A stretch of DNA of 64,000 nt from Chara braunii. Its lineage: Eukaryota > Plantae > Charophyceae. The notes beneath the pieces were generated by a model. It had not been told where the DNA came from. It did not search any database and saw only the letters and a list, made by a program, of their open reading frames with translations. The stretch is taken from assembly GCA_003427395.1 (NCBI GenBank), contig BFEA01000004.1, forward strand, positions 697,874 to 761,873. The letters are read 5' to 3'. Shown here one piece after another: positions 1,820-62,057 of this stretch (its first letter is position 1; every line of letters starts with the position of its first letter). The position numbers were made by a program, and so were the translations under genes.

Positions 1820-2373
1820 ATCAATCAATCAATCAATCAACCAATCAATCAATCAACCAATCAAACCTTTTTTCTTTTCAAGTTTTTTGTTTATTTATTT
1901 TTAAATTATATATCTTCATTTTTCTAAAAACACCTTATACCCCTGCAAAAAACAGAAATTCATTTCTAAAGCATACAGGTGAACTCAGGGACCATATATC
2001 TGATGATAAAAAATGACAAAAAAAAAATCCAACTTTTCTTTATACATATATTTTTATTTTTATTTTAAATCGAATTTAGTTTTTGATTTTTAAAAAATCC
2101 GAAACAAAGTCGGATTCCAAAAAAAAAAAAAAAGGGTTGTAGGGCTTAAAATTCCCTACAACCCCATATATATATATATATATATATGTATTGTCAAATA
2201 GAACTGCCCGGTAAACCGTAGGCAGAGAGGGATATATATATATATATATATTTTTTTAACTTATTATTTAATTCAGGAAAATTCTGGTAAAATCGGGTCG
2301 GCTGCGGATGCGGACCCGTCTGCATCCGCCATCCGAGATCGGACCCGCGGACGCGTCCGCGGGTGTTTCATAG
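1762..2373 (-). mobile_element. Third, diverged member of the CTATG-TIR family (other end probably in the gap)
   Basis: Minus-strand start CTATGAAACACCCGCGG, then hammerhead fragment, (TA)n, GGGGTTGTAGGG..CCCTACAACCC hairpin, AT-rich block, (TTGA)n and (GT)n, in the same order as the 15.2-kb copy. Confidence 0.62.
2190..2232 (-). mobile_element. 3'-terminal fragment of the hammerhead repeat
   Basis: Reverse complement CCCTCTCTGCCTACGGTTTACCGGGCAGTTCTATTTGACAAT, flanked on both sides by (TA)n. Confidence 0.72.
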
Positions 2374-3031
2374 GTCCTGTACAACAAACATAGAGTGCGA
2401 GGTGAATGCACGCACACCAGTGAAGTAGTAGCACGGGCACTGCGTTGTGTGCCCATGCGCCTGTTGCTCGCTCGTTGTGAACGGGTGCACGATGCATAGC
2501 GCAGGGCACCGCATGGCCCGCCACATGTATGTGTTAGACCCTTGGTGGTAATGAAGATGTTTCTATGGAGCGTGTTATGTTGTCTTTTCTCTATCCTCTT
2601 TGTGGAATACACCGTTATGAGGGACTTGTGATTCATAGCCATGAATGGTCAGAACGTTAGGGTCGGACAATCTATCGTTAAACTGTCATTTCTGGCATCA
2701 GTCAACCATAGTGCAATGCAACGACAAAAAAAAAAGAAAGAAAAGATTGGACTGTTTGTTGGAGACTTTTATTTTATGAGTAGGAGCCAAACCTCGTTGG
2801 ATCTATGGGTTTTGGGTTTAATTAATGTAACGGTAGTTTCTGCATTGCGAGACAACGGCGCCTGTGAGCGCCACAGAGTTCCAAATTCGCAGGAATAACA
2901 GTTGACTGCAATCTGAACGCAATGCAGTTTGAAACTGCAAAACAAACAGGTACCGGTAGCGGTACCGGTCCTGCCAGTTCAACAATTGGCAAAAATGGGA
3001 GGTACTGGTACCGGTACCGTACGTTTCCCCA

Positions 3032-5826: not shown

Positions 5827-5938
5827 ATTGTTATAGAGAGCTGCTCGGTGAACCGTAGGCAGAGAGGGAGAAGAGGACTACAAAGGAGGGGATGTGACAG
5901 ACTTCTCCGTCAGAGTTCCACTGACTCATCAGGAGGCT
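5827..5938 (-). mobile_element. Hammerhead-repeat copy, 5'-truncated and diverged
   Basis: Reverse complement reads AGCCTCCTGATGAGTCAGTGGAACTCTGACGGAG...CTGCCTACGGTTCACCGAGCAG; the GAAA core is mutated; TA-rich flanks. Confidence 0.75.
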
Positions 5939-7448: not shown

Positions 7449-7624
7449 GTTTACCGGGCAGTTCTATTTGACGATATATATATATATATATTTTCAGCCT
7501 CCTGATGAGTCGGTGAAACTCCAACGAAACAGTTTGTCACAGCCCCTCGTTTGTTGTCCTCTTCTCTCTCTCTGCCCACGGTTTACCGGGCAGTTCTATT
7601 TGTGACGATATATATCGTCAAATA

Positions 7625-13333: not shown

Positions 13334-13418
13334 CGGATGGAGAGGGATTCGAACCCCCGATATTTTGTAATATGTCAGTTTTCAAGACTGGTACCTTCAA
13401 CCACTCAGACATCCATCC
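13334..13418 (-). tRNA. trnS: tRNA-Ser(UGA), plant mitochondrial type; probable NUMT
   Basis: GGATGGATGTCTGAGTGGTTGAAGGTACCAGTCTTGAAAACTGA...GGGGGTTCGAATCCCTCTCCATCCG; 7-bp acceptor stem, TGA anticodon, long variable arm; resembles plant mitochondrial trnS(uga). Confidence 0.8.
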
Positions 13419-15343
13419 AAAGCAAAGACGCCCCTTACGCGTGGCGTTGCGCCTCGAACGCAATGTGCATTCTGCTCGAGATCTAAAATCACTTTCTCAG
13501 CACTCTGCACAATCCAGCAACAACATTCACCACCTTCATAATGACACTCATTATCCTTTCTGCGGAGAGACCTGATCACACCATGTAGAGCACTGAGCTA
13601 AGTACTCGAGAGGCCACTGTTAATCCTTGCAAGAGGCTTATGTGGGGGGCGGGGGAAGAGGAGGATTATGGACATCTGACACTGAAGGTCAGTGGAGATC
13701 GGGAAAGGTTGTTTCGTTGAGTGACTCCAAGATGCACCAAAGAGCAGGTGGACATAGTGCGCTTTGGGTACAAAGTAGAGAGAAATGAAGGTTGGCAGTG
13801 TGCTGATAGCCCCATCGACGCGGGCCATCCTTGATTGAAAAGTGTCTGGGGAATCTGGGGATTGACAATGCTGGTGCTGATGCATGATTGACAATGCTGA
13901 TGCTGGATGCTGTGCAAGGTTTATTCGGGCGATAATTGTACGTGTGCAATGCATTGGCAGGAGATATTACCATGATGTGCAAGGTTTTCATCGGCTGGTA
14001 CTACGACAAATTGCTGTGTTGGCACCTCACGAGGCAGCCTGAGAAGGTCCCTGGTACATTTGACCTAGAGAAATTCTGTTAGGATCTTAACAGAATTGCT
14101 GCAAAACATCTACTACACAGCTGCAACAGACTGTCAGCAATTACAGGCTCGATTGCACGCTGATGCAATGGCTGGCATAAACATGGAAATACGATCATCC
14201 AAGGCACGTTTCAGTGCTTTCAGCACATCCACATCCACGACGTCAACATTGACGCAGTACTTTCGAGTCTTCGAAGCGAAGGAGAGCCCACAAACGAGGG
14301 TCTTGTAAAATGATTTGGTCCACTGTGGCCACATGACCATCAACAATGTCAGCACACCATGCAAATAATTATCCACAGGATAAAAGTCCGGAGGAGGCAC
14401 ACTGCTCGTTATTTGGAGTGCCACTTTTTGTGGCCATGGCGGAATATTTGTTCACTTGCCGAATTGGACGCGCAATTGGCTGGTGCTGTCTTTTACCACA
14501 CACACTTATTTCTCTAACAGCCGGCTGTGGATGTAATTCAACAACCTTCGGCAATCGTAGGACGCCCCATACTTCTGTAGTGCGAGCAACCCAACCCATG
14601 TGAACATGCTTAATGAAATTTCAAATTTCAAATTTCAAATTTAAGAACACCTTGTGCTTAAGAACACCTTGTACTTGTGGAGCAAGCAACCTGATCCATA
14701 TTCACAAACACATGAAATTTGAGACCGGAGCCTGTACTTGTCATATGCAGGACCGGAATTCGGCTGCCAGTGGTGAGAATATTGCAAACCACAGATCATG
14801 CGCTCCAATTGACACATGTTTGGTGTAAGCTCAACATCAGCAGCCATTGCAATAAGCAAAGAGCGCCAGGCAAGCATGACTTGGGAGAGTGAGAGATGGA
14901 TTGCCATTCTGAATTAGCTGCTAGGATCAGCATGCGGTGTAGGGCGGAACGCACAACATAAAATGGACAAGAGCGCCAGGCAAGCATGACTTTGGGGCGA
15001 ACAGTGGAGGGCGGCCTTAGGCATCGCAAACATATCCACCCGCTGCCGGACGAAAACCCTTCACGAGGAGCGGCCTCATGTGTGAACCGTTGCGGATTGA
15101 TGCAGCCATCAGCATTAGATAGAGATGGTGGTGTATACATTCCGGGAGCTGCAATCGTATAGAAAAGCAGTAAACATGTGCATGTGCATTCTGAGAATGA
15201 TTTTTTCCCTGGTTGCTGGTTCTTACCCTGGCCCTATGTGACACCCGCGGCCTAGGCCGCAGGCAATTCGGCCCCTGCGGCCGAAGAGGTCGGCCACAGC
15301 CGCAGCAGCCGCCAGGCCCTACTGCGGCCCAATTTTTTTTACA

Positions 15344-15503
15344 GTGTAATCAGTGAGGGGATTCTGCAGACTGTTGAGGGTTCAGCCTCCTGATGAGTCG
15401 GTGAAGCTCCGACGAAACAGTTTGTCACAGCCCCTCGTTTGTTGTCCTCTTCTCTCTCTCTGCCTACGGTTTACCGGGCAGTTCTGTTTGTGACGAATAG
15501 GAC
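15344..15503 (+). mobile_element. Hammerhead-containing short repeat (retrozyme-like), longest copy
   Basis: Hammerhead followed by a CT-rich tract and a 3' hairpin CTGCC..CGGTTTACCG..GGCAG, ending in (TA)n; homologous to the copies at 2.2, 5.9, 7.5 and 19.7 kb; 5' boundary approximate. Confidence 0.75.
15366..15425 (+). ncRNA. Type III hammerhead ribozyme (structurally complete)
   Basis: Stem III GCAGACTGT/ACAGTTTGT; GTT cleavage triplet (15373-15375); stem I GAGG/CCTC with loop GTTCAG; core CTGATGA (15390-15396); stem II GTCGG/CCGAC with loop TGAAGCT; core GAAA (15414-15417). Confidence 0.88.
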
Positions 15504-15894
15504 ATATATATATGGGGTTGTAGGGTTTTAAAAGCCCTACAGCCCCTTTTTTTTTTTTGAATTTGACTTCATTCAAGTTCATTTACAATTTGTAAAAAAT
15601 GAAAAACGAAAATCGGTTACAAAATAAATAAAAATAAAAAATAAAAGAAAAGCAGGAATATTACATACATATACATATTTTTTCTTTCACGAGTCCTTAA
15701 AATTTTGCCAAAGTACTTGCTTTTCTTCTTCTTCTTCTTCTTCTTCTGTGCTGTTTGATTGATTGATTGATTGATTATTGATTGATTAGAAAGAAAAAAA
15801 AAATTGAACACGCTAGTTCGTGTGTGTGTGTGTGTGTGGGCACGCACTTGTTTGTGCACGCTTCTGTGTATGTGTGTGTCTCTCTGTGTGTGCA

Positions 15895-15928
<34 letters not shown>

Positions 15929-15942
15929 GTGTGGTGTGGTGT

Positions 15943-15977
<35 letters not shown>

Positions 15978-18392
15978 CTGTGCGCGCGCGCATGTGTTTG
16001 TGCGCACACGTGTGTGCGTGTGTGTGTTTCCCCGTGTGTGTCCCCCGCATGACGGGTGGAGGGGAGGGAGGACCCCTCCCCCACCAATCAATCAATCAAA
16101 AAAACAATCAATTAATCGATGTTTTTTTATTTTAATTTTTTCTATTTTTTTGTCACACAACCTCCCCCCCCCCCAAATTTCCCTTTTTTTTTTATAGTGG
16201 CTTCCGGAGGGGGACGCCATGCGCAGGCAATGCGCGCGCCCCATTTTCAGGCGTGCGGCTCCGCCTGTGCATGGCGCGTAGCTGCCGGCCTCCTCAGCCG
16301 CAGGATCCACGGCCGTGGGGGTCACATAGCCCTGGCCATATACCCTCCCCCCCCCCCCCTCTCTCTCTCCCCGCATGGTTGGGTCTGTGGTAGGATTTGG
16401 GGAGGGATTTAGGGAGGCACAGTGGCAGACACCAGTTCTAACAAATAATGAAGACATCCAAACAGAGGGCAAAAGGAAACCAAAAACCAGTCGAATAGGT
16501 GAACCCGTGCCTGGTAGCAGTGCGGCGGGAAGAAGACGTTAGAACAAACAATAGACGCAAAACCCCCAAGGAATTGCTAAAAGACTTTCAAGGTCGACCT
16601 GAGAACAACTCCAGCAGACTTTCAACCACGGGCCACCTCTAAATAAACAAAAGATGCACCACCAAAACATACAAAGCAGATAACACCAAAGATGTCATTT
16701 CCACGTAGACTCCACACTGCTAACCTAACCTCCGTCTAATCTCGGACCTCTGATCGAAGCTCCAACTCCACTATCACTGCCAAAAATCGGATAAAAACGA
16801 AAAACCAAAAATCGGATAAAAACGAAAAACCAAAAATCGGATAAAAACGAAAAAGATTAACTAGCAAAACCGGTCAAAAGAAGAAGAGAGCAACAATCAG
16901 AACACAGAGAGCACCTACACCTCCTCACAAGTGATATCCCTCCGTCCGAGCTGACATCACATTCGGAGCCCCGCAGAATGCTTCAGAAACTAAAACACAA
17001 CAACAATACACCATAAGTTGGAGACACTTGTTGCACTTCCTTATAGATAGACACAAGACTCCTTCCTGATTATGATTCAGAAGGACATATCTTTCACAAG
17101 GTAGCAGCCATCGAGCAACCAAGAGTCTAGTTCGCATGACCACAGGACATGCCCATTTTGTCGACAACAGACTTGCGATCCATAAATCCCAGGCAGGAGT
17201 GCCCCACAGCCTCTGTTTTAAAAAGCACCAGCACACGACACATCGGCCCGCGGGTGTCAGCAGGAAACCTGGCACCACTTTTGAGGCCGCCGATTTTTTT
17301 TTTTTAACAGCGCCCCACGCCGCGCAGTCCCTCCGAGTTTTGCTAGTGGCGACAAAAAACTTTCTGCAAGGCTGCCGCGGCCGTGTACTTCCGGTTTAAC
17401 ACTCGGCATGCCCGTGCAAAGGAGGATTCCCGCCAAAATTATTTCTATATGATAGGGGTATGGCCAATCCGAAGAGAGGGCAAGATCCACCATCGGCCCA
17501 CCAACAGCTGGCATAGGGACCGTGTACTTGCAGTTTAACTCATTCAAGTCTGACAGCAGGCAGGCATCAGTCAAAGATAAATCACAGCACCATAACACAC
17601 CAGTCTCGCATCCTATACCAGCAACAATGCACTCGATGCTTTTCTCATTCCGCACCCTGTACATGTACCTTGCAGATCAGGTGAGTGAGACCTGTTCCTT
17701 CTCCTTTCCCCTCACGTTCACGTCCTTTCATGAACAGTCGTACGCCCTAAACCGCAAGATACAATGTTGTTTGTGAAGATCCCCTAATAATCCGCAAGGA
17801 CTATCTACAAGGTGTGAAGGAGGAAAACTGGTGGGCACATCATTGGACTAGAATGTGTGGCTGGTATGTGCTGCTGACCCATGCTGCTAAGACATCAACA
17901 GAGGGGATCACATCGATCTGGAGAAGTACCTACAAGCAGACACACACAGCGGCACCACAGACCGAGGATAAAGCCGTCGAACGAACAACCCCCCCTATCA
18001 AAATGACTACGAACCTCCCCTCCGCATCCTCTGGCTAGAAGAAGAGGTGAGGGCAAGGCTAGAAGAAGAGGTGAGGGCAAGTGCAGCACACACGCAACAA
18101 CAGCCACCCGACAGCAATGCTCTCTCGCAGTTGGTTGATGGCTCTATTGTTATCAGCCCGTCCAACATGAGACATGTTGCGTTCATGCAAATTGGCTCTT
18201 TTAAATTCCCATAAGTTGGGCTTATTCAAACCTTGCTCCTGGAAAAGCAATGCGTAAAAAAAAAGAAAAAAAAACACTGAAAGCAGCGACAGCACATTTC
18301 GCATCTCCAAAAGATGCCCTCAAAAGTCCCAAAAACGCAAACCTAAGAAAAGAATACCAATCAAGCAACAACATGTACGACCCATCCCTCGC

Positions 18393-19014: not shown

Positions 19015-20419
19015 CTATGTGACACCTGCAGCCTAGGCCGCAGGCAAACCGGATGCTGCGGCCGGAAAAGTCGATCGCGGCTGCGCCCAACAAGGCCTAC
19101 CTTGCGGCCCGGTTTTTCGGGTGTTTTTTTTGGGTCAAAAAATAAGTAATATATTGTCACACTGTGAATCAGAGCGCAGAAGCGAAAAAAAGAAGAAGAA
19201 AATAAGAGAAAAGAAAAAAGGGGGAGAAGAAGAGGTAAGGAAAGCTCCACCTGTTCATAACCTCTTACGTACAAGGCCAGCCACGTGGATGACAGGTTGA
19301 GCGCTGGCTGCCCCCATCCCCGTGTGTCATAAAGACCCACTTGCACGCAGCCAAAAGGCAAAAAGGTAAAGAAAAGGCGGAGGAAACCAAACCTCACAGA
19401 AGAAGAAAGCCTATTAAACAGACGAAGCAAGTACACATCCCACAGATAATCCAATTACCATCCCACAGAACATATTTTCTTTTTTCTTTTTTCTTTTTTC
19501 TTTTTTCTCAGGTTTCTTTTTTTGTGTTTTTCTTTCCTCGGTTTCTTTTTTTAACTTTTTACTCGGTTTTCTTTTTTTAACTGTTTCTTCTACACTTCAT
19601 CTGTCACCCCCTCGGCAGATAGGACAACTACGGTGAGGATGACGGGGATGTTCACAGGGATACCCAAGGAGAGTTGCGTTAGTGCAGCTATATAGCCTCC
19701 TGATGAGTCGGTGAAACTCCGACGCAACACTTCCCCTCGTTTGTTGTCCTCTTCTCCCTCTCTGCCTACGGTTTAACGGGCAGCTCTGTTTGACGATATA
19801 TATACGGGTTGCAGGGTTTGCAAAACCCTATAGCCCATTTTTTTGTTTCTGAATTTGACTTCATTTGCGATTTTTAAAAAATGAAAAACGAAAATCGGTT
19901 AAAAAGAACAAAATAAAAATAAATAAAAGAAAAGCAGGATTTTTTTTTTCACATTTTTTTCATGACTGATAGTCCTAAAAAGGAAAGCAGGTAATTTTTT
20001 CTCTTCTTCTTCTTCTTCTTCTTCTTTGCTGTTTTTTTTTCCTTCTTCTTTGCTGTTTCTTCTTCTTCTTCTTCTTCTTCTTCCTCTTCCTCTTTGCTGT
20101 TTTTTTCGTTTTCTTATTCTTCTTCTTCTTCCTTGCTATTTTTGTTCTCCATCTTCTTCTTCTTCTTCTCCAATTTCTTCTTCTTTTTGGTCTTCTTTTT
20201 CTTCTTTGTTTCTTCATCTTCTTCTTCCATTTGTTCTTCTTGTTGTTCTTTGCTGTTTCATTTTTTTTGTGGTTCTTCTTCTTCTTCTTGTTCTTTTTTC
20301 CACGACCTCCTTCAGGCAATTCAGCAGCGGTGGTCAGACACAGATAGAGAGAGAGAGAGGGCTGCCACACGGCCGCTCGCCAGCAATCGGCTGCCAAGGG
20401 GCAGCCCGACAGTGGTCCA

Positions 20420-20875: not shown

Positions 20876-21021
20876 CGAGTACGGTCATACTTCGGGTAAT
20901 GCACTCGATCCCATCCGAACTTGGAAGCCAAGTGCCGTTGGGCCGGAATAGTACTACTGGGATGGGTGACCTCCTGGGAAGTCCCGGTGCTGTACCTTAA
21001 CAACAACAGAAGAAAAAAAAA
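20876..21021 (+). pseudogene. 5S rRNA-derived retrocopy with A-rich tail (Rab6 intron 5, antisense)
   Basis: GTACGGTCATAC...GATCCCATCCGAACT..GAAGCCAAG...AGTACTACTGGGATGGGTGACCTCCTGGGAAGTCCCGGTGCTGTACCTT followed by AACAACAACAGAAGAAAAAAAAA; isolated copy with a 3-nt duplication in the internal control region. Confidence 0.85.
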
Positions 21022-22808: not shown

Positions 22809-22943
22809 GGATATATCTTACCGGCATATGTCTTGAATGAACTTGAGAATGCGCCTCTTCAATACTCTTACAACCAGCAGGCAAACTATCACTGAGCTTC
22901 TGTGAATTATCGCTCAGGGCGGCGGTGTGAAAAAGGAAACTCA

Positions 22944-23150
<207 letters not shown>

Positions 23151-31249: not shown

Positions 31250-33500
31250 AGCGGACGAGAAGAAGGCAAGGCGAGCATCAGGATCAACAGTGACTGCTCA
31301 AGGAGGAGCGGGGGGGGGGGAGGAGGGAGGGGGCACGAGACTTTTCAAACGCATATGAGAGAGACAGGAAACGTCGGAACAAAAACAACAACCTTCGAAG
31401 AGATGACGGCCGAAAAAAGGAGTTTGACCAGATAATAAAGAGGCCGAAAAAAGGAGTTTGACCAAATAGAAAAAGAAGACTGAGTTGAGGCCAGTGGAGA
31501 CGAAGACAGGAGAGCGGAGGGAAGAGTAAGGGACACGTCACGGGGAAGCGAAGAGCGGACGGTGAAGCTCATGGAAGCCAAATGTTTCTGTTTTTCAGAA
31601 ATCGTAGGTGTTGTCCTTGGCTCTTCGAGGAGAAACAAAGCGGAATTCGAATGGAAGCCAGGAGGGGAGAAGAGCAAGAGCGTTCCTGAAGTGGGAAATG
31701 AAGAGAGGAATTCACCGGAGTGAAGATCGGTTAAGTACATAGTGGCGTGCGAGAGACGTGCAAGGCATGCATCGGACGGTTGGGGATAATCAAAAAGGGA
31801 TAACAAAGGAGGAAGGGACCAAAATGTACTGAAGTTTGTGTAAGGCGCGCAATCGATGATTGGGCATAATCGAAGGGATAACAAGGGATAACTAACGACG
31901 AAGAGAATTAACAGGAGAACAAATCTGCAAGCGTAAGACGCGTTCGGGGGGGGGGGGGGTATAATCGTGAAAGGGGGAGCCTGAGGAAAAAATAAAAACA
32001 GGCGTCGCCTAAAAGGGGGACACTCGGTTGCCAGAGCTTCTAAAGGAACCAAGTAACACGGGGAAATGGGAGAGAGAGTTTTGTGTGGAGTGAAAAAGGG
32101 GCAAGGAAGCATGAAGTGCAGGAGGAACGACGATGCGCGCAGGGCGCACGAGGAGAGGTCACAAGGAGAAGATCAGTGAAGTGAAGTGAACTGAAGTGAT
32201 CATTCTAGGATGGAGTGAGGTGATGAGTGAAGGAAGGTGATGATGGATTCAGTAAAGGGAGACAGAACAAGGGAGTGGAAGAGAAAAATTCGAAAAATAT
32301 AATTGCACTTCCCTGATAAGTGTCCGGCAGAGTACAAGGGAGAATGTACAAAAAATGTAGGAGGGAAAAAACGTAAGAGACGTGAGGAGGGAAGGAATGA
32401 GAGAGAAAATGAACGTAGGAGGGAATCACATCACATGAGGGGTTAGCAGCCAGAAAAGCACGGAGCAAGGAGGAGGAGTGAGCAAAACGAAAGTAGGAAG
32501 CAGGGTCGACAGAGCAGAGAAAAAAGAAGAGCGCGGACGTGAAAGTGAAAGCGTGACGTGTGATGGGGGCAAGTAAAGGGGAAACGTATTACTAATAGAG
32601 TAAACGAGAAAACGAGAAGGCAAAGCGGAGTGTCGAGGGTAGTAGAAAGGTGAGCACAGTCAAAAGTGGAGGAGAGCGGATGGCTTGTGAAGCAAGCAGC
32701 GCGAAAGCAAGGGGGGAGCTCGAAGAGTTAAGAGTGGGCGGTTGAGGTAGAAGGCTGGGGATAACAACATACCATTCGAAGAAGAGTAGTATAGCACCTA
32801 CGACAGCGCCTACTGTAGGACAGCAGAGAAACGGGCGTGAAGGCAGAAGAAGCGTAGAGTAGAGTAGAGTAGAGAGACAAAGGAGATGGACGAAAAGTCG
32901 GAAGGAGGGTGCGGAAGGTGGAGAGGGTTAAAGAAGCGTGAAGGGGAAGTAGAGGAGAAAGAAAAAAAAGGTGAACGGAGAATTGAGGGGGGATGTAGAG
33001 GGTTAAAAAAGGGTAAGGTAAACGGAAATAAACAAAAACTAGGGGGAGGGGTGAAAAAACAGATGATCGTCCTTCGGGACATCCGTTAAAATTGTAACGA
33101 CACAGAGAAGATTAGCATGGCCCCTGCGCAAGGATGACACGCATAAATCGAGAAATGGTCCAAATTAAAAAAAAAGAAAACAGATGATCGAAGGCGAGAA
33201 AGAGGGAGAGAACGGGGAGAGTGGGCGGGAAGTGGGGAGAGCGGCGGGGAAAGTGAGGAGAGCGATGAAGAGAGTAAAGAGGAGAGTGAAGGGGACAATG
33301 GCGAGAGCGAGGGAAGACAAAGTGGGCTATATAACGGAGTGCGTCAAAGGAACGAAGCAGAGTAGAAAAAAAAGTAACAAGCAGAGTGTGTAGGAAACAG
33401 CCTACGAGTAGTCGGAATGAAAATAGGAAGAGGGGGGCAAGGACTGTAGCCAGGAGAGCTCAAGGCAACGGAGCCAAGGCGTAGGGGAGAGCAGTAGAGC
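31250..33500 (-). mobile_element. Highly decayed LINE ORF2 relic (hosts the U6 retrocopy)
   Basis: Strong purine bias on the plus strand and a remnant VLAPLF-like RT motif near 33.4 kb on the minus strand; boundaries approximate. Confidence 0.4.
33069..33176 (+). pseudogene. U6 snRNA processed pseudogene
   Basis: Full U6 body with ACAGAGA box and ISL (ATTAGCATGGCCCCTGCGCAAGGATGACACGC); poly(A) in place of the U-tail; TSD AAAACAGATGATC at 33056-33068 and 33177-33189. Confidence 0.92.
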
Positions 33501-39048: not shown

Positions 39049-41934
39049 TTTAAGCATCTATGTTGGGGAGTAGAGGACGTGCTGATAAGAGCAGACACTC
39101 CCTCTACTCCCCTAGATGGATAGATGGCTCCGTTCCATTAGTGGGGAGCTGCACCTGCTGGAAACCGGGTCCAGCGTCCCTTTACATCATCCATAGTGAA
39201 CATATACCAAAATTTAAGCTGAAAAGTGGGCCCAACGACCCTTCATATCTGGGAATGCTGGGGAATAGTTATGCCTCTTCACCCTATTCAGGCGCCAGAT
39301 ATGCCATTACATCTAGCAATATTAACACTCCCCATCTGCTTATCGTGAGCTGGGACTGGGATCCACAGATAAAACCCAGACTGGGACACAGGTAATCACT
39401 CAAACGCATACCATGAGCCAGGAACTAAGGCCAACTTTGGTGGAGGAAAAGGATCAGGAAACTCAGAAAGGGGGCTGAGGGGAATGGAGGGATCTATGTT
39501 ACTCTAGTCATTAAAATATAAGTGGTAATTCATTGGGAGCTCACCGTGAGCTATCTCGCACGCTCCATTCCATTCAACCTGCCCAATTTTACCACCTTGT
39601 TCCCCTCCAAGCCAGTTTAGATTGAACGTTTTTATGTGTTGTTTGATTTCTTTTTCTGCTGTCAAGGTTTTAAGTTTTTTTTTTAATGTTTCTCATCTCG
39701 AGTTAATATCTAGTTGGATTTGTTGTTTGATGGAATCTGTGAACTCAGGCCCATCTAGACGGGCATCTTCCATTTCAAATGTGCACCTGTGAAACCATAT
39801 GGCATAGAAAAAAGTTATTCTCCCGATCGTGAATAGGTTCGTTGTTAAGCTGTCTTCACATGATGGGGTCCAGGCTTCCAGGAGGAGAGCTTTCTAGTTC
39901 CATGGCCATGGTAGGGAGGTTTCAATCTGGTTCCAGATCCTATCCCACCAACGCCATAACCAAACTGTCCCCTGAGCACTGTAAAAATATATGTTCTATT
40001 GTTTCCGGAATCAATTTGGACGGGAAGGCAGATTTGCAGAACTTGCACTAGGGAAGGGTTATTCCTCTTTGTTCTAGAGTAGTTTTGTCAATGATCCAGT
40101 CATTGGTTGACAAGCATCGGTGAGTGATCTGCCATTGAAGGGATGCCATTTTAGTTGGTTTGGATTTGATGGAATGGAACCATTTGACTGAATGTAATTT
40201 TTTTTTGCTCACGTTTAGGTGTCTCATCCATCGCTCTTCTATTCTATCTTTTAAATTTATCTTCGGGCGCAGCATCCTGTATGTGGATTTTACTGACAAC
40301 GTATGAAGAGCCCGTGTATGGGAACGTCCTGGATATACCTTAGACGCCTAAGACCAACTAACAGGATCTAGTGGGAGATGGGATATAGGAGTATCTGGTT
40401 TATAAGTCATCCACCTATCTTTGATCATTAATATCCTAGTCCTGAATAGTCTGTCTTTTTGGATTAGCCCCATGCTTTGATGTGCAGTGGATCTAAGGAA
40501 CTCATCCTCCTTCAATTCATAAATTGTCATTAACACATCACGATTAGGGCGTAGCTCACTAATTTTTCCTACCACACCTGGCTGATTATGGATGGAGACC
40601 CAATCATTAGGAATAAGGGTAGGCCATTTTCTCAAGATCCTAACCCAATCTAAGGGGATTATATCAATTATCTGTTCCAATGCTTCCTTCTGATGGCGTC
40701 AGTATCTTAATTTATCATTAAGGGTCGGGAGGTCAATCCAGTCTTGGTCCTCCACACTCCCAATATCTCTGATGCGCGTAACTCCTCTTCTAATTCATCC
40801 TTTCCAAGAAGAGTCCGTGCAGTTTAAGGTGCATTCATGATAGTCTCTGATGAGCGCATTGTTGAATAATGTTTGTTGGCATACTTCTTCCCATCTTTCT
40901 GGTGCTACTTTACCTGGGATGGGTAGTTTCCTCCACGTTTTGAGCAGGTCAGTCCATAAGGGGTCCCTGAATAGGTCAGTCCTTGCTGCTTGGCGATCAG
41001 ATAAATCCAAATTTTGGGGTTCTGATGGGGACGCCCTTAAAATCGGCCAGGCGCGATTTTCCAACCATATTAGAGGTTCAACCTCATCTGGGGTGAGAGG
41101 GGCGAGGCGTCTGATCTGTTCGCAAGCCAGATTATTCCATGGGGCTTGGGGATTGAATAGTAGGCATTTTATCCATTGAATTGAAAGTGTCTTCGCTTGG
41201 GTGGTGGGGTCAATTATACCTAGACCGCCTTTGGATTTAGGTTGAATTAATGATTTTCATGCCACTCTGCTGATAACATTTTTGGATTGATGATTACCTC
41301 GCCAAAGATATGCTACCAACTGCGTCTGCAAGATTTTAATGGATAAGTTATCAAGGGCCCAGATAGCGGATTTGTACCAAATAGAGGCGAGGACCACATT
41401 GTTAATCGCTAGCGTTCTTCCTATCAATGAGGTGTGTTTATCTTTCCATAATTCGAGTTTTGAGAGTGCATGTTTCAAAATCCCTTCGTTATTGGATGTT
41501 GGTTTGCCAAGGGCTGATAGTGAAATCCCGAGAACCATGACTAGCGAATCAAGCGGGAACCATTTGATCGTTGGTCGCTCTGGAGGCCTTACTCCTTGAT
41601 AGTGCATCCACCAACCAAGGGTTTTGTTTCCCCAGTTAATCCTCATGTCTGATAGTTTACAAAATACGTTCATAATCCGTTGTATCGCCTCTAGGTTTTC
41701 ATGTGAGGCATCAACCATGAGAGATAGGTCATCAACGAAGCGAGAACATATCGGAATGGCGTCCTCTGGTATGAATGTAACTTGGATGCGCTTGATATCT
41801 TTATGGTGGCGAATGTGAGCTGCCAGTGCTTCCATGATGATTACAAAGAGAAGCGGGGCAATGGAATCTCCTTGCCTAATTGATCTTTGTAGCATTATAG
41901 GAGGAGCTACATTCCCATTGACCATGACTCTTGT
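39018..41934 (-). mobile_element. 5'-truncated, decayed L1/Tx1-type LINE
   Basis: RT motifs RSIRQGDSIAPLLF and RFVDDL, SLIGRTLAINNV, and a C-terminal zinc-binding-like region; poly(A) tail (T-run 39018-39047); TSD AGACAGGC at 39010-39017 and 41935-41942; several stops and frameshifts. Confidence 0.9.
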
Positions 41935-54759: not shown

Positions 54760-55856
54760 CATAGAGAGAAAATCATACAAAAATTGATATAACTTAAGAA
54801 GAAGAAGACGTGAGTTTTACTATCATGGCGACATTAACTTCTCCCCTACATGCCTCGACATCACACCACCGAGGATCTCAACCCTTCCACTCATTTGCCA
54901 CTCAGGCTGAGGAATGAAACCATCTACCCCCTATAAATATAAGTTTACGGACATACTCTCACCCGTACGCGGGCATTCCCGGTCGACATGTTACTCATCA
55001 ACCCGGTGTTCTAGTCCCTATGCATTGGCCCGTCTGAAACCTGGTCACAAGCTGCCCTGACCTTCATTTTTCGCGCGAAAAGGCGCTCGGGTGGACGCTC
55101 TGCCAGCCTCCTCGAAGAACCAAGTCTGTTGAGCGGTACCTGGCCACTATTAACGCTAAATACGTTCCTGCGAAAAACTCGCTAAAAACGCTCGGGCGAC
55201 AACTCTGCCATCCTCCCCGACGAACCAAGTCTTCTGACAGGTACCTGGCTAACATTACCTGCAAAAAACATTCCTGTGGAAAACAACCTGGTACTCCACG
55301 AAAAAACTCGATAGGGCCGAGTCCTTGAGTTTTACCCGACGATCCAGACCCCCTTGCAGAAGAGCCAATGAGAGTCCAGACAAAACCAGAAAAATCCAGA
55401 ACATGCAGAACAATGAAGAAAAATAGACAAAAGTAGAAAAATGGAGGTCACACCAAAAACACTAGACGCACCGGCGCGCCTCAGTCCGATGGTGGAGCAC
55501 GCAACTCAAGCCAAAAACGCCCAGTTGGTATCCATAAAGTCTCCCGCGTATCACGTACCCGGCTCTGTTGGATAACCCACGATTACCTGTCAGCAAGCTA
55601 TGTTTCAATCGCACAGGACATATCTTTCCAGATCCTGCTGCCATCTCGCCGATACATCCAGTCCAACCCTGCCAGCACGACTTTATCAGGGTAGTTTGCC
55701 TTTCGGAGCTCCTCGTTAAGGCTGAGGATATTGAGAAACGTGATCCCCACTTGGTTGGAGTTATTGGAGATTCTGAGAATGGTATTGGCAACAGTCGCAA
55801 ACTTCGCCAGGCGAGGCCCAAATGGGGCGAAATCTTCGTACGTTCAGAATTTCAGG
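54760..55856 (-). repeat. PLE 3' pseudo-LTR
   Basis: Direct repeat of 60963-62057 with scattered substitutions. Confidence 0.92.
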
Positions 55857-57736
55857 GGGCCAGCATCCCAGATCGAGTTTCCGTTCTTAAACTTATGAAA
55901 CATCACCAGGGCTGCTTCGTTAATAACCAACATACGAGTCTCAAGAAAATCAAGGATCCCTGTACCCGTGTCCGTGCGTTCAAGCTGCAGTCCATCGGGA
56001 TAGCAGCTGGTGACACGATCCAGTCGATCCTTGGCAAGCTGACGGCTCACTTGGTCACCTTTCTTGAAGAAGGCAATTATTAACAGGTCGTCAATATATG
56101 GTTTCCCCGAAATCAGGCGAGCATCACTTCCAAGCTCAGATAAAAAGATGAACTCAGCGCACATACACATCACGCAAGCAAAGGGAGGGCTTGCCCTCCC
56201 ACCCATAGGAATCCCATGCTTCTGTCGGAGGATCAGTCCAGAGACTATAAAGAATGTATTGTCCAGTTGGAAGTTGGTTAAACTTACCAACTTGCTCAGT
56301 CGGATTGACTTCCACCCAGCTTCCCCGTGAGACTTGCCAAATGTGGCTAGTTTCTTCCGGGGGTTAATTCGAATCCATTTAATCCCTCCCTGCTGAAACA
56401 GTTCCACCATCCACCTAACAGCACGGATAATTTCCGTGTGGGGGAGTTGAGTAAACATTTCTTTGATGTCGTATGTGCGTGCTTCGAGCCCATAGCCCCT
56501 TGGTACCAATTGGTTAATCCTGGACACCTCAGGTTTCAGGTCGCTGATAGCCCGAAGGTTAAAGTTTGGTGCCTTCGTCCGCTTAATCAGCGCGTTCAAA
56601 GCCGTGGAAAGTAAACCGGAGGCAGTCCGGTAGGGCCTAAAGAAAGACGGAACCATGGGTCTTTTCTTTTCCTTGTCCTTCTCCTTCGACAGAACGTACG
56701 CATGTTGTACATCACCTTTGGGATCCCACTTACTGATCTCATCCAAGTGGTTCTTGCCATATCTCTTCCTCATCTCGGTGAGGACCATTTCTTTCGACGA
56801 CTGAATGGTCTCGTAATTTTCATTCTCAGTGTACATCTTCCGAAGCCCCATCTCATACAACTTGGGGCATTCAATCCAAGTCTCTGATGTGTTGCGGTCG
56901 AGGGGGGACAAGACCAAACCCGACAGAGACTGCCCAATACCTTTAACGTACTCACTCAAAACACAACCATCAGGCTTTGGTACCCCGACCTTGCAAACGG
57001 ATAACAAATTCACCTGAATCTCCCCTTGTACCACGCCAGTCCGTCGAAGCTCTGAGATGGCAGTATTACAAGCCATATTCAGAGCATCCTTGCTAGTAAA
57101 TATTACAGGGAAGGAAACATTTTTTAAGTTAAACAGGAAAGGGTCAATGCCATCCAATTCGCTTAGTTTGACTGCAACACGCCCATTTAACTTAGGCAGT
57201 TCAAAGCCAGCGCATACACAGTCAAAAACATATGCTTGCGCAAATGGCTTCTGGTTATGCAACAGGTCTCCGACATTATGGCCTTTCATCCATACTGCTC
57301 TCGTCCTCCTAGCATACAAGTCAGCAAGCGAAATTGGAACAACATGTGACAGAATCCAGTCCCTCACAGCAACAACAACTCGGTTTTTGTCTACAGTAGT
57401 ACAGAAGGGAATTTTAACAGTAATACTCAATCTTGGGTTAATGTCAAACTTCCGTTTGAAGACATTTGTAAGGATACCCCGAATGATCTGACGGCCACGC
57501 TGCTGGTTAATGGTCTTAACCCCATTATTAAAGTCAATTAATTCTTCTAAAGAGCAGGCATACAAATCTCTCCTTTTCCAGGGCGCACGCAGGAGGGCAA
57601 TAAGGTGCGCTTTCATCAGATCAGACTTAGTTTGAGTTCTAAGTAATTGGGTGATGAACCAACAACCACCTGACTCAATTGAAGTCTTAGCATAACAACT
57701 TTTTTTCACCATCACACTCGATCTTAGAAAAGCCAA
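55583..57736 (-). pseudogene. PLE reverse transcriptase region (linker, RT, thumb) with two premature stops
   Basis: TYDIKEMFTQLPH, QKHGIPMGGRASPPFA, YIDDLL, FLET; the frame continues past TGA (55844) and TAG (55598), which read CGA and TGG in the other repeat copy, to TAA at 55583. Confidence 0.88.
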
Positions 57737-57913
57737 ACAGCAAAGTCACCAGTGGCCATGCTTTCAACCAGCGATACCCCGACTTATTGCTAATACTCAC
57801 AGGATTGCGGCTTCTCCGCTTATTCAGCAGTTTGAGAATCCTCAGTAGGTCTGGTTCCTGGCAGATCTTAAGATCAGGACAGTCAAAATAAGCATCCCCC
57901 CTCTAAACACCTT

Positions 57914-58354
57914 TTATCTCCGGCAGAAAACTCGATAGGGACGAGTTCTCAGTAGGTCTGGTTGAAAAAACAGAGGTTCAGATATGGCAGCCAAGGGCGG
58001 CCGACAACCTGAACGCTTCTTCCCCCGACCCTTCCGAGAAGACTTAGCAAGCCTGCGACCCATTGAGTTCAAGCCTGGGTTGTGACCCTGAATAATCTTA
58101 GGTTCAATACCCTCAACAGCGAGGGCGGCACCAAACCAGATGGGAATTGAAACATAGTGTTTGATACCAACCTTACGCAACCAAGAGTGTACCGGCTGTT
58201 TGCTACTGGTTTTTACAGCCCTGCAGTGCTCGGACCACCTCTCCCTCAGTGGGCGGATAGTCTTCCCAACGTACACCAACTTAAAGTCTATTGACATGAG
58301 TGCATACACGCAACATCGGCCATCAAGCAGGCTGCCCCACTCTCCATCAGTCAT
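57914..58354 (-). pseudogene. GIY-YIG endonuclease domain of the PLE
   Basis: VYALMSIDFKLVYVGKTIRPLRERWSEH...E...LN; disconnected from the RT frame by lesions. Confidence 0.85.
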
Positions 58355-58528
58355 GCGCAGCCAGAAGGGTAAGTAAGCCCGTCCCTATGCAATGTCCCCC
58401 CTTAGGCAAGCCAAAAGAACAATCAAGACCTTGATCTTATCCATCAACACCTGCAGCGAACTATCAACAGAACATTGCAAGGCACTAATGCGCCTTGATG
58501 CTCTTTTTAAGGAGCGAAAGCTTCCTAA

Positions 58529-60218
58529 TCAGTTACCGGCAATTGAGTCACCACCCTTCTCGTTCCCAGACTCTGGGTTATCACAGTTCCTCGCAGTTGT
58601 CTTGCGAGAGGGCTCAGCGCCCCTGTTCCCAACGTTCACCCCATTTGGGGCATTACCATTTAGTTGGTCCGCGTATTCTTGCAGATCCAACCTCGCTAAT
58701 TCCCAAGCTGCTGGTTCCTTACGAAAGTAAGAAATTTCTCTCTGCTTGCATAGTTCCTGCACCCTGGTATAATGCAAGGACATGTAGAAGTCCTGCCGCA
58801 TTTTCATATACACGGCCAACCCGCCTTCATCAACCTCTTCTTCCTCATGGTCAGGGGTGTTCACGGCAACATCCACATCTTCATTGTCCTCTTCCTCCAT
58901 TCCATGCTCCTTGACAGGCTGTTCCTCAGGATCCACCGCCGGCTGCTTGCCTTTGACGTCGGCGAGACTTTGTGCGATCGCGACCGAGACTTTGTGCAAT
59001 CGAGGCCAGCATCTTCTTCACCTCGGATAAGTCACTGCTCTTCTCCAGTTTTTCACTCAAGTTTTGTCGCACCTGACCGATATCACTGTCTTCCTCGTTA
59101 GAAGAGATTTCAACTCGGCGCGATCTCCCTTTCGAACTTCCTCTCGATTGGGACTTCGTGTTGTTGGCAGGCGTCACAGCAGCGGGCGCTACAGCAGCCA
59201 CTCGCTTTCGCTTCTCGCTACTCGCTTCCTTCTTGACCTTCTTGAGGGCAGCCTTCTCCGCTCTTAGTCGCATTAGCTCCTCCTTCTCGATGGCCACCAG
59301 CTTGGATTCGGAGTCCACTTCCTCAAGCTTCTGGGTGATTAACTTCAGTGAATCTCCGAAGGTCGAAGTAACCCATGCCTTCATATCGTCGGTCTTACAG
59401 TTCGAGCGGACTTCTGACCTGCAGCTCTCGTTTGTGCTGTCCGAAATCCGCACGCCACCCATCCTGCCTCCAGAAATCTTCCTCTTCGCAACGTTGAGAA
59501 CTTTTTTCGACTTTATATCCTCCAAGATGTCCATGTATTCTTTTGTAAAATATGCCCGGTTACCTGGGTCTGGAAAAGCATTCGCAGTCGGACCTTTCCC
59601 ATGGTTCTGATTAGACAATCAACCATCGCCATTTGTTTGAGCTTTGGAATCGAGAAGATCACCATTCTGCGAGCTTGGTACTTGGACGCTAGGTAATTGC
59701 ACATTAGATGGTTGAGGAAGAGGCAGAGGAAGAGGATTCCCAGCAGGGGGCATTTGCCATGGAATGACAGCAGGCCATTGTGCAGTAGTCGGCCACGCCT
59801 GCATAGCCCATGGTGCAACAATCGGTGGCATAGCATACTGCGGGTGAGTTCCGCTATTCACCGGGACGAACGGTGCTGCATTCGTCGGAGGTACCTGTTG
59901 CTGCACCGGCGGTAGCTGCTGCTGCGCACCTTGCGCTTGTACAGTGGGCACAACATACGTTGGCACAATGCCCGGAGGCGCAGGCGCAGGATTATACTGC
60001 CCGGTACCAACTTGATTTGGCAGCTGATGTCCGCCATTCATGTTCGTCCAGTACCGACCACAGCTCGACCAGCGGCCACGCCTAGCTCCTCGGCTCCCGC
60101 TACGACTCAGCATGGAGAAAGCAAACATTATCCACCCAAGGCCCAGGCTAATCTTGTTCTTCACTTCGTTGAACTTTGTATCAGTCTGTAGCTCGGAGGT
60201 CCGGAAGCGCAAGAACAT
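58529..60218 (-). pseudogene. N-terminal region of the PLE (P/Q-rich, coiled-coil-like, SAP-like), broken into three ORFs
   Basis: Consecutive minus-strand ORFs 59619-60218, 58926-59618 and 58529-58999; YMSLHYTRVQELCKQREISYFRKEPAAWELA resembles a SAP helix-turn-helix. Confidence 0.6.
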
Positions 60219-60962
60219 GAGGTAAGGTGGACAGCCTCCTTATCCCACCCGATGTGTAGAGCGCCGCACCCGTAAGAGGGGTATGACACATGCAACTTCG
60301 CTTGCGCAGGCGCACCCGTCCACTTTCCCTCCCAGATACACCCGGATGTGCGAAGATACGCAAGGAGAGCGTTGCGAAGATGACGCAGATGACGTAGATG
60401 TTGTAGATAACTTGGAAAGACGTGGATGACGTAGATGACGCACCGTCCACCTTCCGCTACTCTTCCCCGGCTATTAGACAGACACGCAAGTACACACTCT
60501 CACTGCGTCAAAAGGCCGTTCCGAGCAAGCGTCCCAAATCGCAGCTTACAGGCGATGGGATCCGCCACCACCTCGGATATCACCACTGATACTACCCAGC
60601 GCTTCATACGAGAACATCAGTGCAGCACTACCGACTCTACACAAAAAGTCAGCGACGCGTAATCATCCACGCTCCCCCTTGGTAACTGCGGCTGAGACAG
60701 GATATACTCCACCAGTGGTAAGCATGAAAATAGTGAAAGCCATGCTCCCAAGATAACAAAGGCAATGGAGATCGCAAATGAGGAACGAAAAGCATTTAAT
60801 CGGTCAATCGATTGACTAAGTAATTGATAAACAAATAAATGATTACATGAATGAATGATTGATTAGACATAGGAACACAAAGCAAGCACGATCTCGCAAG
60901 GGAGATTCGGCACCTCAGATTCGTGCCCAAGCCACGGCAAGGTCGAATTTGAGGCTGCGTAC

Positions 60963-62057
60963 CATAGAGAAAATCACAGAAAAATGGATATAACTTAAGA
61001 AGAAGAAGACGTGAGTTTTACTATCATGGCGACATCAACTTCTCCCCTACATGCCTCGATATCACACTGCCGAGGATCTCAACCCTTCCACTCATTCGCC
61101 ACTCAGGCTGAGGAATGAAACCATCTACCCCCTATAAATATAAGTTTATAGACATACTCTCACCCGTACGTGGGCGTTCCCGGTCGACATGTTACTCATC
61201 AACCTGGTGTTCTAGTCCCTATGCATTGGCCCGTCTGAAACCTGGTCACAGGCTGCCCTGACCTTCATTTTTCGCGCGAAAAGGCGCTCGGGTGGACACT
61301 CTGCCAGCCTCCTCGAAGAACCGAGTCTGCTGAGCGGTACCTGACCACTATTAACGCTAAATACGTTCCTGCGAAAAACTCGCTAAAAACGCTCGGGCGG
61401 CAACTTTGCCATCCTCCCCGACAAACCAAGTCTTCTGACCGGTACCTGGCTAACATTACGTGCAAGAAACATTCCTGTGGAAAACAACATGGTACTCCAC
61501 GGAAAAACTCGATAGGGCCGAGTCCTCGAGTTTTACCTGGCGATCCAGACACCCTTGCAGAAGAGCCAATGAGAGTCCAGACAAAACCAGAAAAATCCGG
61601 AACATGCAGAACAATGCATAAAAATAGACAAAAGTAGAAAAATGGAGGTCACACCAAAAACACTAGACCCACCGGCGCGCCTCCGTCCGATGGTGGAGCA
61701 CGCAGCCCAAGCCAAAAACGCCCAGTTGGCATCCAGAAAGTCTCCCGGGTATCACGTACCCGGCTCTGTGGGATAACCCACGATTACCTGTCAGCAAGCC
61801 ATGTTTCAATCGCACAGGACATATCTTTCCAGATCCTGCTGCCATCTTGTTGATACATCCAGTCCAACCCTGCCAGCACGACTTTATCACGGTAGTTTGC
61901 CTTTCGGAGCTCCTCGTTAAGGCTGAGGATATCGAGAAACGTGATCCCCACTTGGTTAGAGTTATTGGAGATTCCGAGAATGGTATTGGCAACAATCGCA
62001 AACTTCGCCAGGCGAGGCCCAAATGAGGCGAAATCTTTGTACGTTCGGAATTTCAGG
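60963..62057 (-). repeat. PLE 5' pseudo-LTR
   Basis: Direct repeat of 54760-55856; begins inside RT C-terminal coding sequence. Confidence 0.92.

Follow-up and report, generated by a model that had tools for sequence, protein, structure and literature searches.

A type III hammerhead motif within an abundant short retroposon of Chara braunii that inserts in a Penelope-like manner

Published schemes assign type III hammerhead ribozymes to flowering-plant LTR retrozymes and type I hammerheads to Penelope-like elements (PLEs) and animal retrozymes (PMC7761336, bioRxiv 10.64898/2026.07.22.740005). Plant LTR retrozymes have two LTRs of ~350 bp, each with a ribozyme, the two ribozymes lying 600–1000 nt apart, and a 4-bp target duplication (Cervera et al. 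2016, PMC4918200). Metazoan non-LTR retrozymes are regarded as non-autonomous PLE derivatives (bioRxiv 10.64898/2026.07.22.740005), and an origin of plant retrozymes from PLEs has been proposed but not demonstrated (PMC5680766). In the alga Chara braunii itself, canonical hammerheads have been described in two PLE subclades, their type being unstated in the text (Craig et al. 2021, PMC8557442). The same study lists the traits of Naiad and Chlamys PLEs: 5' truncation, partial tandems, inverted truncated copies at 5' ends and microsatellite targets.

The window analyzed here is a 64-kb stretch of C. braunii DNA (assembly GCA_003427395.1, contig BFEA01000004.1, positions 697,874 to 761,873). A preliminary description of it singled out a type III hammerhead and considered that motif alone. 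We find that the motif lies in a truncated copy of a short non-coding retroposon, a family that is very abundant in C. braunii (Table 1). For comparison we used eleven further loci of the same assembly, reached through the closest proteins to the reverse transcriptase (RT) of the window's Chlamys element, all of them from C. braunii; they share the repeat families of the window and are cited below by L numbers.

Table 1. Features of the window that bear on the hammerhead and its retroposon family
Feature	Position	Strand	Basis or remark
Type III hammerhead ribozyme motif (helices III, I, II)	15366..15425	+	Descriptor search, RF00008, folding, pair counts
GUU cleavage triplet; predicted cut 15375/15376	15373..15376	+	Hammerhead numbering; family 5' ends and junctions at 15376-15386
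Outer helix GAGGGG/CCCCUC prolonging helix III (15355-15360 with 15431-15436)	15355..15436	+	Folding
5'-truncated copy of ~208-nt retroposon, without about the first 53 nt	15338..15496	+	92.8% identical to full-length L012 89291-89498
Small 3'-terminal stem-loop ahead of the element's 3' end and (TA)n target	15460..15481	+	Folding
Host MITE-like DNA element, with the retroposon at an internal (TA)n	15234..16329	.	19-nt TIRs (17/19), 8-bp TSD
Family copy starting 6 nt past the cut; partial tandem with the 3' end of another (7449-7491)	7493..7608	+
Family copy starting 9 nt past the cut, in second MITE copy	19694..19794	+
Decayed family copy starting 9 nt past the cut	5837..5938	-
Family's 3'-terminal 40 nt, in third MITE copy	2193..2232	-
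Chlamys-type Penelope-like element, GIY-YIG (57914-58354) upstream of RT (55844-57736)	54765..62057	-

As a motif, the hammerhead is confirmed to be complete and apparently intact, which makes it a candidate self-cleaving RNA. All core nucleotides stand where they had been placed, with CUGAUGA at 15390-15396 and GAAA at 15414-15417 in addition to the GUU triplet, in agreement with the general core of CUGANGA, GAAA and NUH. Helix III has 9 bp (15366-15374 with 15417-15425), helix I has 4 bp (15376-15379 with 15386-15389) and a 6-nt loop, and helix II has 5 bp (15397-15401 with 15409-15413) and a 7-nt loop; helices I and II are closed by loops and helix III is open, the arrangement that defines type III. 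When both strands of the window were scanned with type I and type III descriptors, this was the single match, against chance expectations of 0.04 (loose) and 0.01 (strict) hits per Markov-resampled window. The Rfam Hammerhead_3 model (RF00008), proposed earlier as a check, matches 15368-15423 over its full length (E=1.8e-8), but the score of 43.8 bits lies under the gathering score of 48.5, a curation threshold rather than a sign of structural failure; at that threshold, neither the window nor any of five loci yields an Rfam hammerhead. The predicted ensemble is dominated by the three hammerhead helices, in the genomic context as well. Modeled pair probabilities within the 159-nt copy are ~0.85 for helix I, 0.87 for helix II and 0.97-1.0 for eight of the nine pairs of helix III, the outermost pair standing at 0.68, and the fold of the region has z=-2.5. 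The extension of helix III by GAGGGG/CCCCUC also held up, as an outer helix, with a 5x5 internal loop between it and helix III.

The proposed contact between the loops stands only in part. The hexaloop GUUCAG (15380-15385) and the heptaloop UGAAGCU (15402-15408) do contain complementary letters, UUCA and UGAA, and a 4-nt complementarity between random loops of 6 and 7 nt has a probability of ~0.04. Watson–Crick pairing between them is not borne out: it shows no covariation and is broken in 3 of 30 cells. The loop contacts of natural type III hammerheads are non-canonical (PMC2632901, PMC6155905), with a tertiary motif that joins UNmYN to RNnA (PMC2632901). Loop I, read as G-UUCA-G, fits UNmYN only when the G-G opposition is counted as stem, and loop II resembles the UGAGAU type of PLMVd. 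G15406, within loop II, is private to the window copy, 97% of reads having A. By eye, loop I in some copies fits a polymerase III B-box at 8 of 9 letters.

The cleavage triplet had been read as a possible CpG-decayed GUC. GUC does exist, in 20-25% of reads and in L006 and L009, but GUU is the majority triplet (63-68% of reads, with any G below 10%, and 3/3 intact short-family copies), GUA is present in 12% of reads, and neither G15376 nor any of the seven CpG sites of the window copy is changed in at least 10% of reads. Because GUU is the majority and the other CpG sites are without variation at this level, GUU is more likely an inherited subfamily state than a private decay of the window copy. 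GUU is a slower triplet than GUC. At position 17, 7/7 genomic copies have U, C or A, and G is unlisted there in reads. Across ten copies, two of them closely related, 97.4% of helix cells are paired. Covariation among genomic copies, named in the preliminary description as a test, is weak overall: helix III has one true double change, between the short family and the long family described below, and a double change in helix II can be explained by CpG decay. A covariance model of the family kept just five pairs, half its rows being truncated, and was set aside.

The complete retroposon unit comprises 91 nt, the cut site and ~117 nt, ~208 nt in total, followed by (TA)n. Full-length copies occur at two loci (L002 24412-24620 and L012 89291-89498); both begin at the same base, 91 nt ahead of the cut, and their flanks are unrelated. 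All copies share the 3' sequence that precedes (TA)n, and the distance from cut to 3' end is 117-121 nt. The 5' ends vary; relative to the cut, copies begin at -91, -91, -38, +6, +6, +9, +9, +16, +51, +51, +53 and +78, three of them at the 3' base of helix III. Self-comparison finds six family pieces in the window, and 13 are present in 447 kb of non-gap Chara DNA, with a patchy distribution; scaled to the size of the genome, the total would be roughly tens of thousands. Nothing about the single copy at 15366 points to a host function. The full-length unit (L002 24410-24620; L012 89291-89498) has ends that form an inverted repeat with some mismatches; in the sense strand these are compatible with G-U pairs, so that the two ends of the RNA may pair. 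Another short family, likewise abundant (window 19159 (-) and 33961 (+); L002 12330-13560) ends in TGAC(A/G)ATAT before (TA)n, the same motif as the ribozyme family, and often lies tail-to-tail with it, which suggests a shared mobilizer.

In the window, the copy that holds the hammerhead sits inside a MITE-like element whose 8-bp target duplication is 15226-15233 and 16330-16337. Two further MITE copies of the window have inserts at the same (TA)n site, each truncated differently; in L005 and L001 there are MITE copies with this site empty. Given the different truncations at one site and the empty sites, the inserts represent separate insertions. The empty copies, and the three filled ones with differing 5' ends, likewise rule out that the ribozyme cassette belongs to the MITE as a constant component. 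The MITE-like family itself (15234-16329, 19015-~20855, ~1870-2380 (-), L005 and L001) has an 8-bp target duplication and GC-rich subterminal repeats, and its internal (TA)n collects retroposons. The window also contains copies of U6 snRNA followed by an A-run (33069-33169 (+), Rfam), of 5S rRNA (20877-20998 (+)) and of a tRNA (13334-13418 (-)), which are probably retroposed or pseudogenes, a LINE-type RT fragment (41257-41925 (-), Pfam RVT_1), and a short stretch that by eye reads like a Rab GTPase exon (22941-23050 (-)).

The same ribozyme recurs in other elements. A long family consists of a 1.45-kb non-coding, (CA)n-flanked element (L006 16151-17620) with the same type III hammerhead and a GUC or GUA triplet. 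One contig, L010 (1-1534), represents a collapsed 1448-nt tandem or circular unit of this family, with an 86-nt terminal repeat; although filed among metagenome contigs, it is most likely Chara DNA, as it matches L006 over ~1 kb. A third form, decayed and led by (CA)n, carries the same ribozyme in L009 and L012. The bodies of the two hammerhead families are unrelated, and the core nucleotides are kept in both. In exact-pattern scans of metagenomes, a 22-mer was found in one contig (L010) and a 32-mer in none, and viral contigs and bacterial and archaeal genomes gave no match.

The insertion pattern of the family resembles that of PLEs in several respects. The copies are truncated at the 5' end and share a fixed 3' end, as Penelope-like elements do. 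Partial tandems are present (window 7449-7608; L002 13260-13548), as is, next to a 5' end, a truncated copy in inverted orientation (L002 24307-24616), and the targets are microsatellites, (TA)n for the short family and (CA)n for the long one. Retroposon copies that abut (TA)n have no poly(A) and no target duplication. The Chlamys-type element of the window, whose 1092-bp pLTRs are 95% identical and whose upstream ORFs are broken, is a plausible representative of the class of mobilizer. As the actual parent of the family it was rejected, having no hammerhead and no sequence in common with it.

Hammerheads do occur in the pLTRs of seven Chlamys-2-like elements (L005, L006, L007, where it is decayed, L008, two in L009, and L012). 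The preliminary description had noted that Penelope-associated ribozymes are usually type I, and these agree: 7/7 are minimal motifs of type I, their helix III is palindromic, and none has sequence in common with the retroposon family. Where measurable, they lie 96-193 nt before the pLTR end, a range that includes the 117-121 nt of the family. That the retroposon is a simple tail of the sampled Chlamys-2-like elements is ruled out by these unrelated type I ribozymes. No pLTR or RT-flanking region matches the family across the window and the eleven Chlamys-RT loci, a sample outside of which the PLE-X and Chlamys-1 types fall. As judged from sequence, then, the insertion geometry is Penelope-like and the ribozyme type is not.

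The ribozyme-less pLTRs present a further feature of their own. Their last ~140 nt are conserved (window 54775-54915 and 60976-61116 (-); L001 14798-14940 and 9060-9202; L004 9170-9310) and are predicted to form two hairpins whose loops could pair through two crossing helices of 5 and 6 bp. Of the cells, 97.7% are paired, with no covariation above that of shuffled sequences and no Rfam match. This segment stands where other Chlamys elements have their hammerhead, and it is a candidate structured RNA or ribozyme.

Two RNA-seq runs and two contig sets, for which library strandedness is not on record, bear on cleavage. The family is abundant in all of them. Nine of the 11 displayed 5' loose ends, in reads and contigs together, fall at 15376-15386, a count that leaves out an upstream end at 15338 and a mismatch artefact at 15407; the latter ends were rejected as real 5' ends, as they reflect clipping beside the private G15406. 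The main head-to-tail joint, 15490->15377, is equivalent to 15489->15376, the exact cut base, since G stands at 15490 and at 15376 alike; position 15377 recurs in an inverted joint. Joints were mapped on the window copy, a reference without the start of the unit. Upstream of the cut, depth drops 13-21-fold for first-mate-minus reads and 4-7-fold for others; first-mate-minus reads exceed the others 3.4-3.9-fold downstream of the cut, and just 1.2-fold upstream of it. If first-mate-minus reads are assumed to represent the sense strand, this bias is consistent with sense RNA that loses its 5' part. Some 69% of reads continue into unrelated flanking sequence, which means that family RNA comes mostly from embedded copies, and a few loci may dominate the signal. 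The flanks and junctions of the locus at 15338-15496 have little or no read depth, so the window copy itself is probably silent. No pile-up of RNA molecule ends was seen at the cut in the RNA-seq data. Head-to-tail joints could in principle indicate RNA circles, but as proof of circles they were rejected, because such joints exist in the genome as partial tandems (7449-7608).

Many other family copies, and RNA-seq junctions, begin 1-9 nt after the predicted cut. This agrees with the cut site assigned in the preliminary description and is the best evidence that the ribozyme of the family is active, being consistent with cleavage. Stalling of RT at the hairpin of helix I could produce the same clustering of 5' ends.

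On balance we favor, as the probable explanation, a short non-autonomous retroposon that has the motif as its ribozyme and borrows the RT and endonuclease of a Penelope-like (Chlamys) element. From the observed sequence and family, with its fixed 3' end at (TA)n and its variable 5' ends, we infer priming at a nick in (TA)n: a Penelope-type enzyme would nick the repeat, and RT would prime there and copy the RNA from the 3' end of the element. On a template that had cut itself, the copy would end at the new 5' end or a few bases short of it (+1 to +9), and such copies of ~115 nt would be dead, unable to cleave again. On an uncut template, RT might stall at the base of helix III, leaving copies that start at +51 to +53, or might read through, in which case longer or full-length copies would regenerate the ribozyme. 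A slow GUU triplet would favor the keeping of both cut and uncut templates. The window copy would derive from an uncut RNA on which synthesis stopped at -38. For the one Penelope element studied in vitro, priming occurs at AT-rich DNA and cleavage is dispensable for insertion (PMC11167929); by analogy, the hammerhead may be a passenger, or its use may lie in freeing the RNA from host transcripts.

Several other explanations have to be weighed against this one. In a retrozyme cycle proper, a tandem transcript would be cut twice, the unit RNA circularized, and the circle reverse-transcribed across the ligated cut site into full-length copies. The tandem or circular 1448-nt unit of the long family, which has the same ribozyme, speaks for such a cycle, as do the abundance of sense RNA, the ends of the 208-nt unit, which can pair over 9 bp in L002, and the ability of type III motifs to cleave as monomers and to drive the circles of plant retrozymes (PMC4918200, PMC6155905). 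Yet no full-length tandem of the short family exists in 447 kb, the commonest joint, from 3' end to cut site, does not rebuild the ribozyme, and joints of this kind are present as DNA and so are no sign of circles; we therefore regard the cycle as unlikely for the short family. We think it somewhat more unlikely that the sequence comes from an autonomous Chara PLE already described with a canonical hammerhead, the endonuclease-less PLE-X type (Craig et al. 2021), and is the non-coding 3' end of its pLTR. The canonical hammerheads of the two C. braunii subclades (PMC8557442), whose type the text leaves unstated, and the position of the ribozyme near the 3' end would fit, but all seven Chlamys-2-like ribozymes are minimal type I with a palindromic helix III, and the shared start at -91 of two independent copies with unrelated flanks suggests a short master rather than random truncation.

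The two remaining explanations are less probable again. A SINE-like element could be moved by a LINE of RTE, L1 or R2 type, its ribozyme trimming read-through 5' ends as HDV-like ribozymes do in R2 and RTE. The fixed 3' end with its small stem-loop would suit such an element, a LINE-type RT fragment lies in the window, and 5' truncation and inversion are known with LINEs too. The insertions have neither poly(A) nor target duplication, however, and the family does not match the LINE fragment; moreover, a 5'-trimming ribozyme would be expected at the 5' end, whereas here it lies in mid-element and its 3' product could not cut again, all of which makes a LINE-driven SINE improbable. Finally, the motif could be an inactive relic whose 5' ends cluster because RT stalls at a stable three-way junction. 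The three copies that start at the 3' base of helix III point in this direction, as do the predicted pairing of U17 with A14 when GUU copies are folded with nearest-neighbor parameters and the missing pile-up of RNA ends. But two families whose bodies are unrelated have both kept the core nucleotides, G is avoided at position 17, there is covariation in helix III, and the exact cut base is where junctions lie, so that we consider a relic highly improbable.

The retroposon that we favor as Penelope-mobilized works like a non-LTR retrozyme or a non-autonomous Penelope-like element, and its likeness to each known system is incomplete. With the type III hammerheads of RF00008 (PLMVd, sTRSV, Arabidopsis and plant retrozymes) it shares the core, the three helices with helix III open, the common UGAAA-type loop II, and a long helix III competent for cleavage as a monomer; it differs in its GUU majority, its 4-bp helix I with a G-UUCA-R hexaloop and its sub-threshold Rfam score, and its activity is predicted. 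Like the plant LTR retrozymes, it is non-coding, carries a type III hammerhead and belongs to the green lineage (PMC4918200). In contrast to them, it has a single ribozyme and no flanking direct repeat or LTR pair, and thus nothing between LTRs that could hold a PBS and PPT, its copies are 5'-truncated and target microsatellites, and its partner is, on present evidence, not Gypsy; the missing LTRs and 4-bp target duplication exclude it from that class. The metazoan non-LTR retrozymes (PMC7229834) likewise lack LTRs and consist of short non-coding repeats with a ribozyme, which Penelope-like enzymes probably mobilize, but they are type I and the Chara family is type III with an algal host, so that membership fails on ribozyme type. 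The short Chara family is, furthermore, dispersed and mostly truncated at the cut site, whereas the long one, judged by its one collapsed tandem or circular unit, may be tandem, like metazoan retrozymes. With the Chara Chlamys PLEs (Chlamys-2_cBra type and PLE-X; PMC8557442) and non-autonomous Chlamys elements (MRC1), it has in common the genome, the style of insertion and a ribozyme ~100-190 nt before the 3' end. The Chlamys-2-like pLTR ribozymes examined differ from it in type, in their palindromic helix III and in sequence.

The Chara family thus mixes the two published schemes, joining a type III ribozyme, the form usual in viroids and flowering-plant retrozymes, to Penelope-style insertion. 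Our literature search found no paper that describes it, although it could be among the Chara PLE hammerheads of PMC8557442. After a type III cut, the strand that is copied lacks part of the ribozyme; copy boundaries therefore become a genomic read-out of cleavage, and the role of hammerheads in Penelope-type transposition can be tested directly. Between Penelope-like elements and plant retrozymes the family is a candidate link, and not a proof of one. More tentatively, and with considerable doubt on our part, the two families could be Penelope-mobilized non-LTR retroposons, short (TA)n elements and long tandem (CA)n ones, that have one type III module in common and spread at least partly through circular RNA. 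If so, the algal sister group of land plants would hold a living intermediate between PLEs and the retrozymes and hammerhead viroids of angiosperms, with thousands of genomic copies recording cleavage in vivo.
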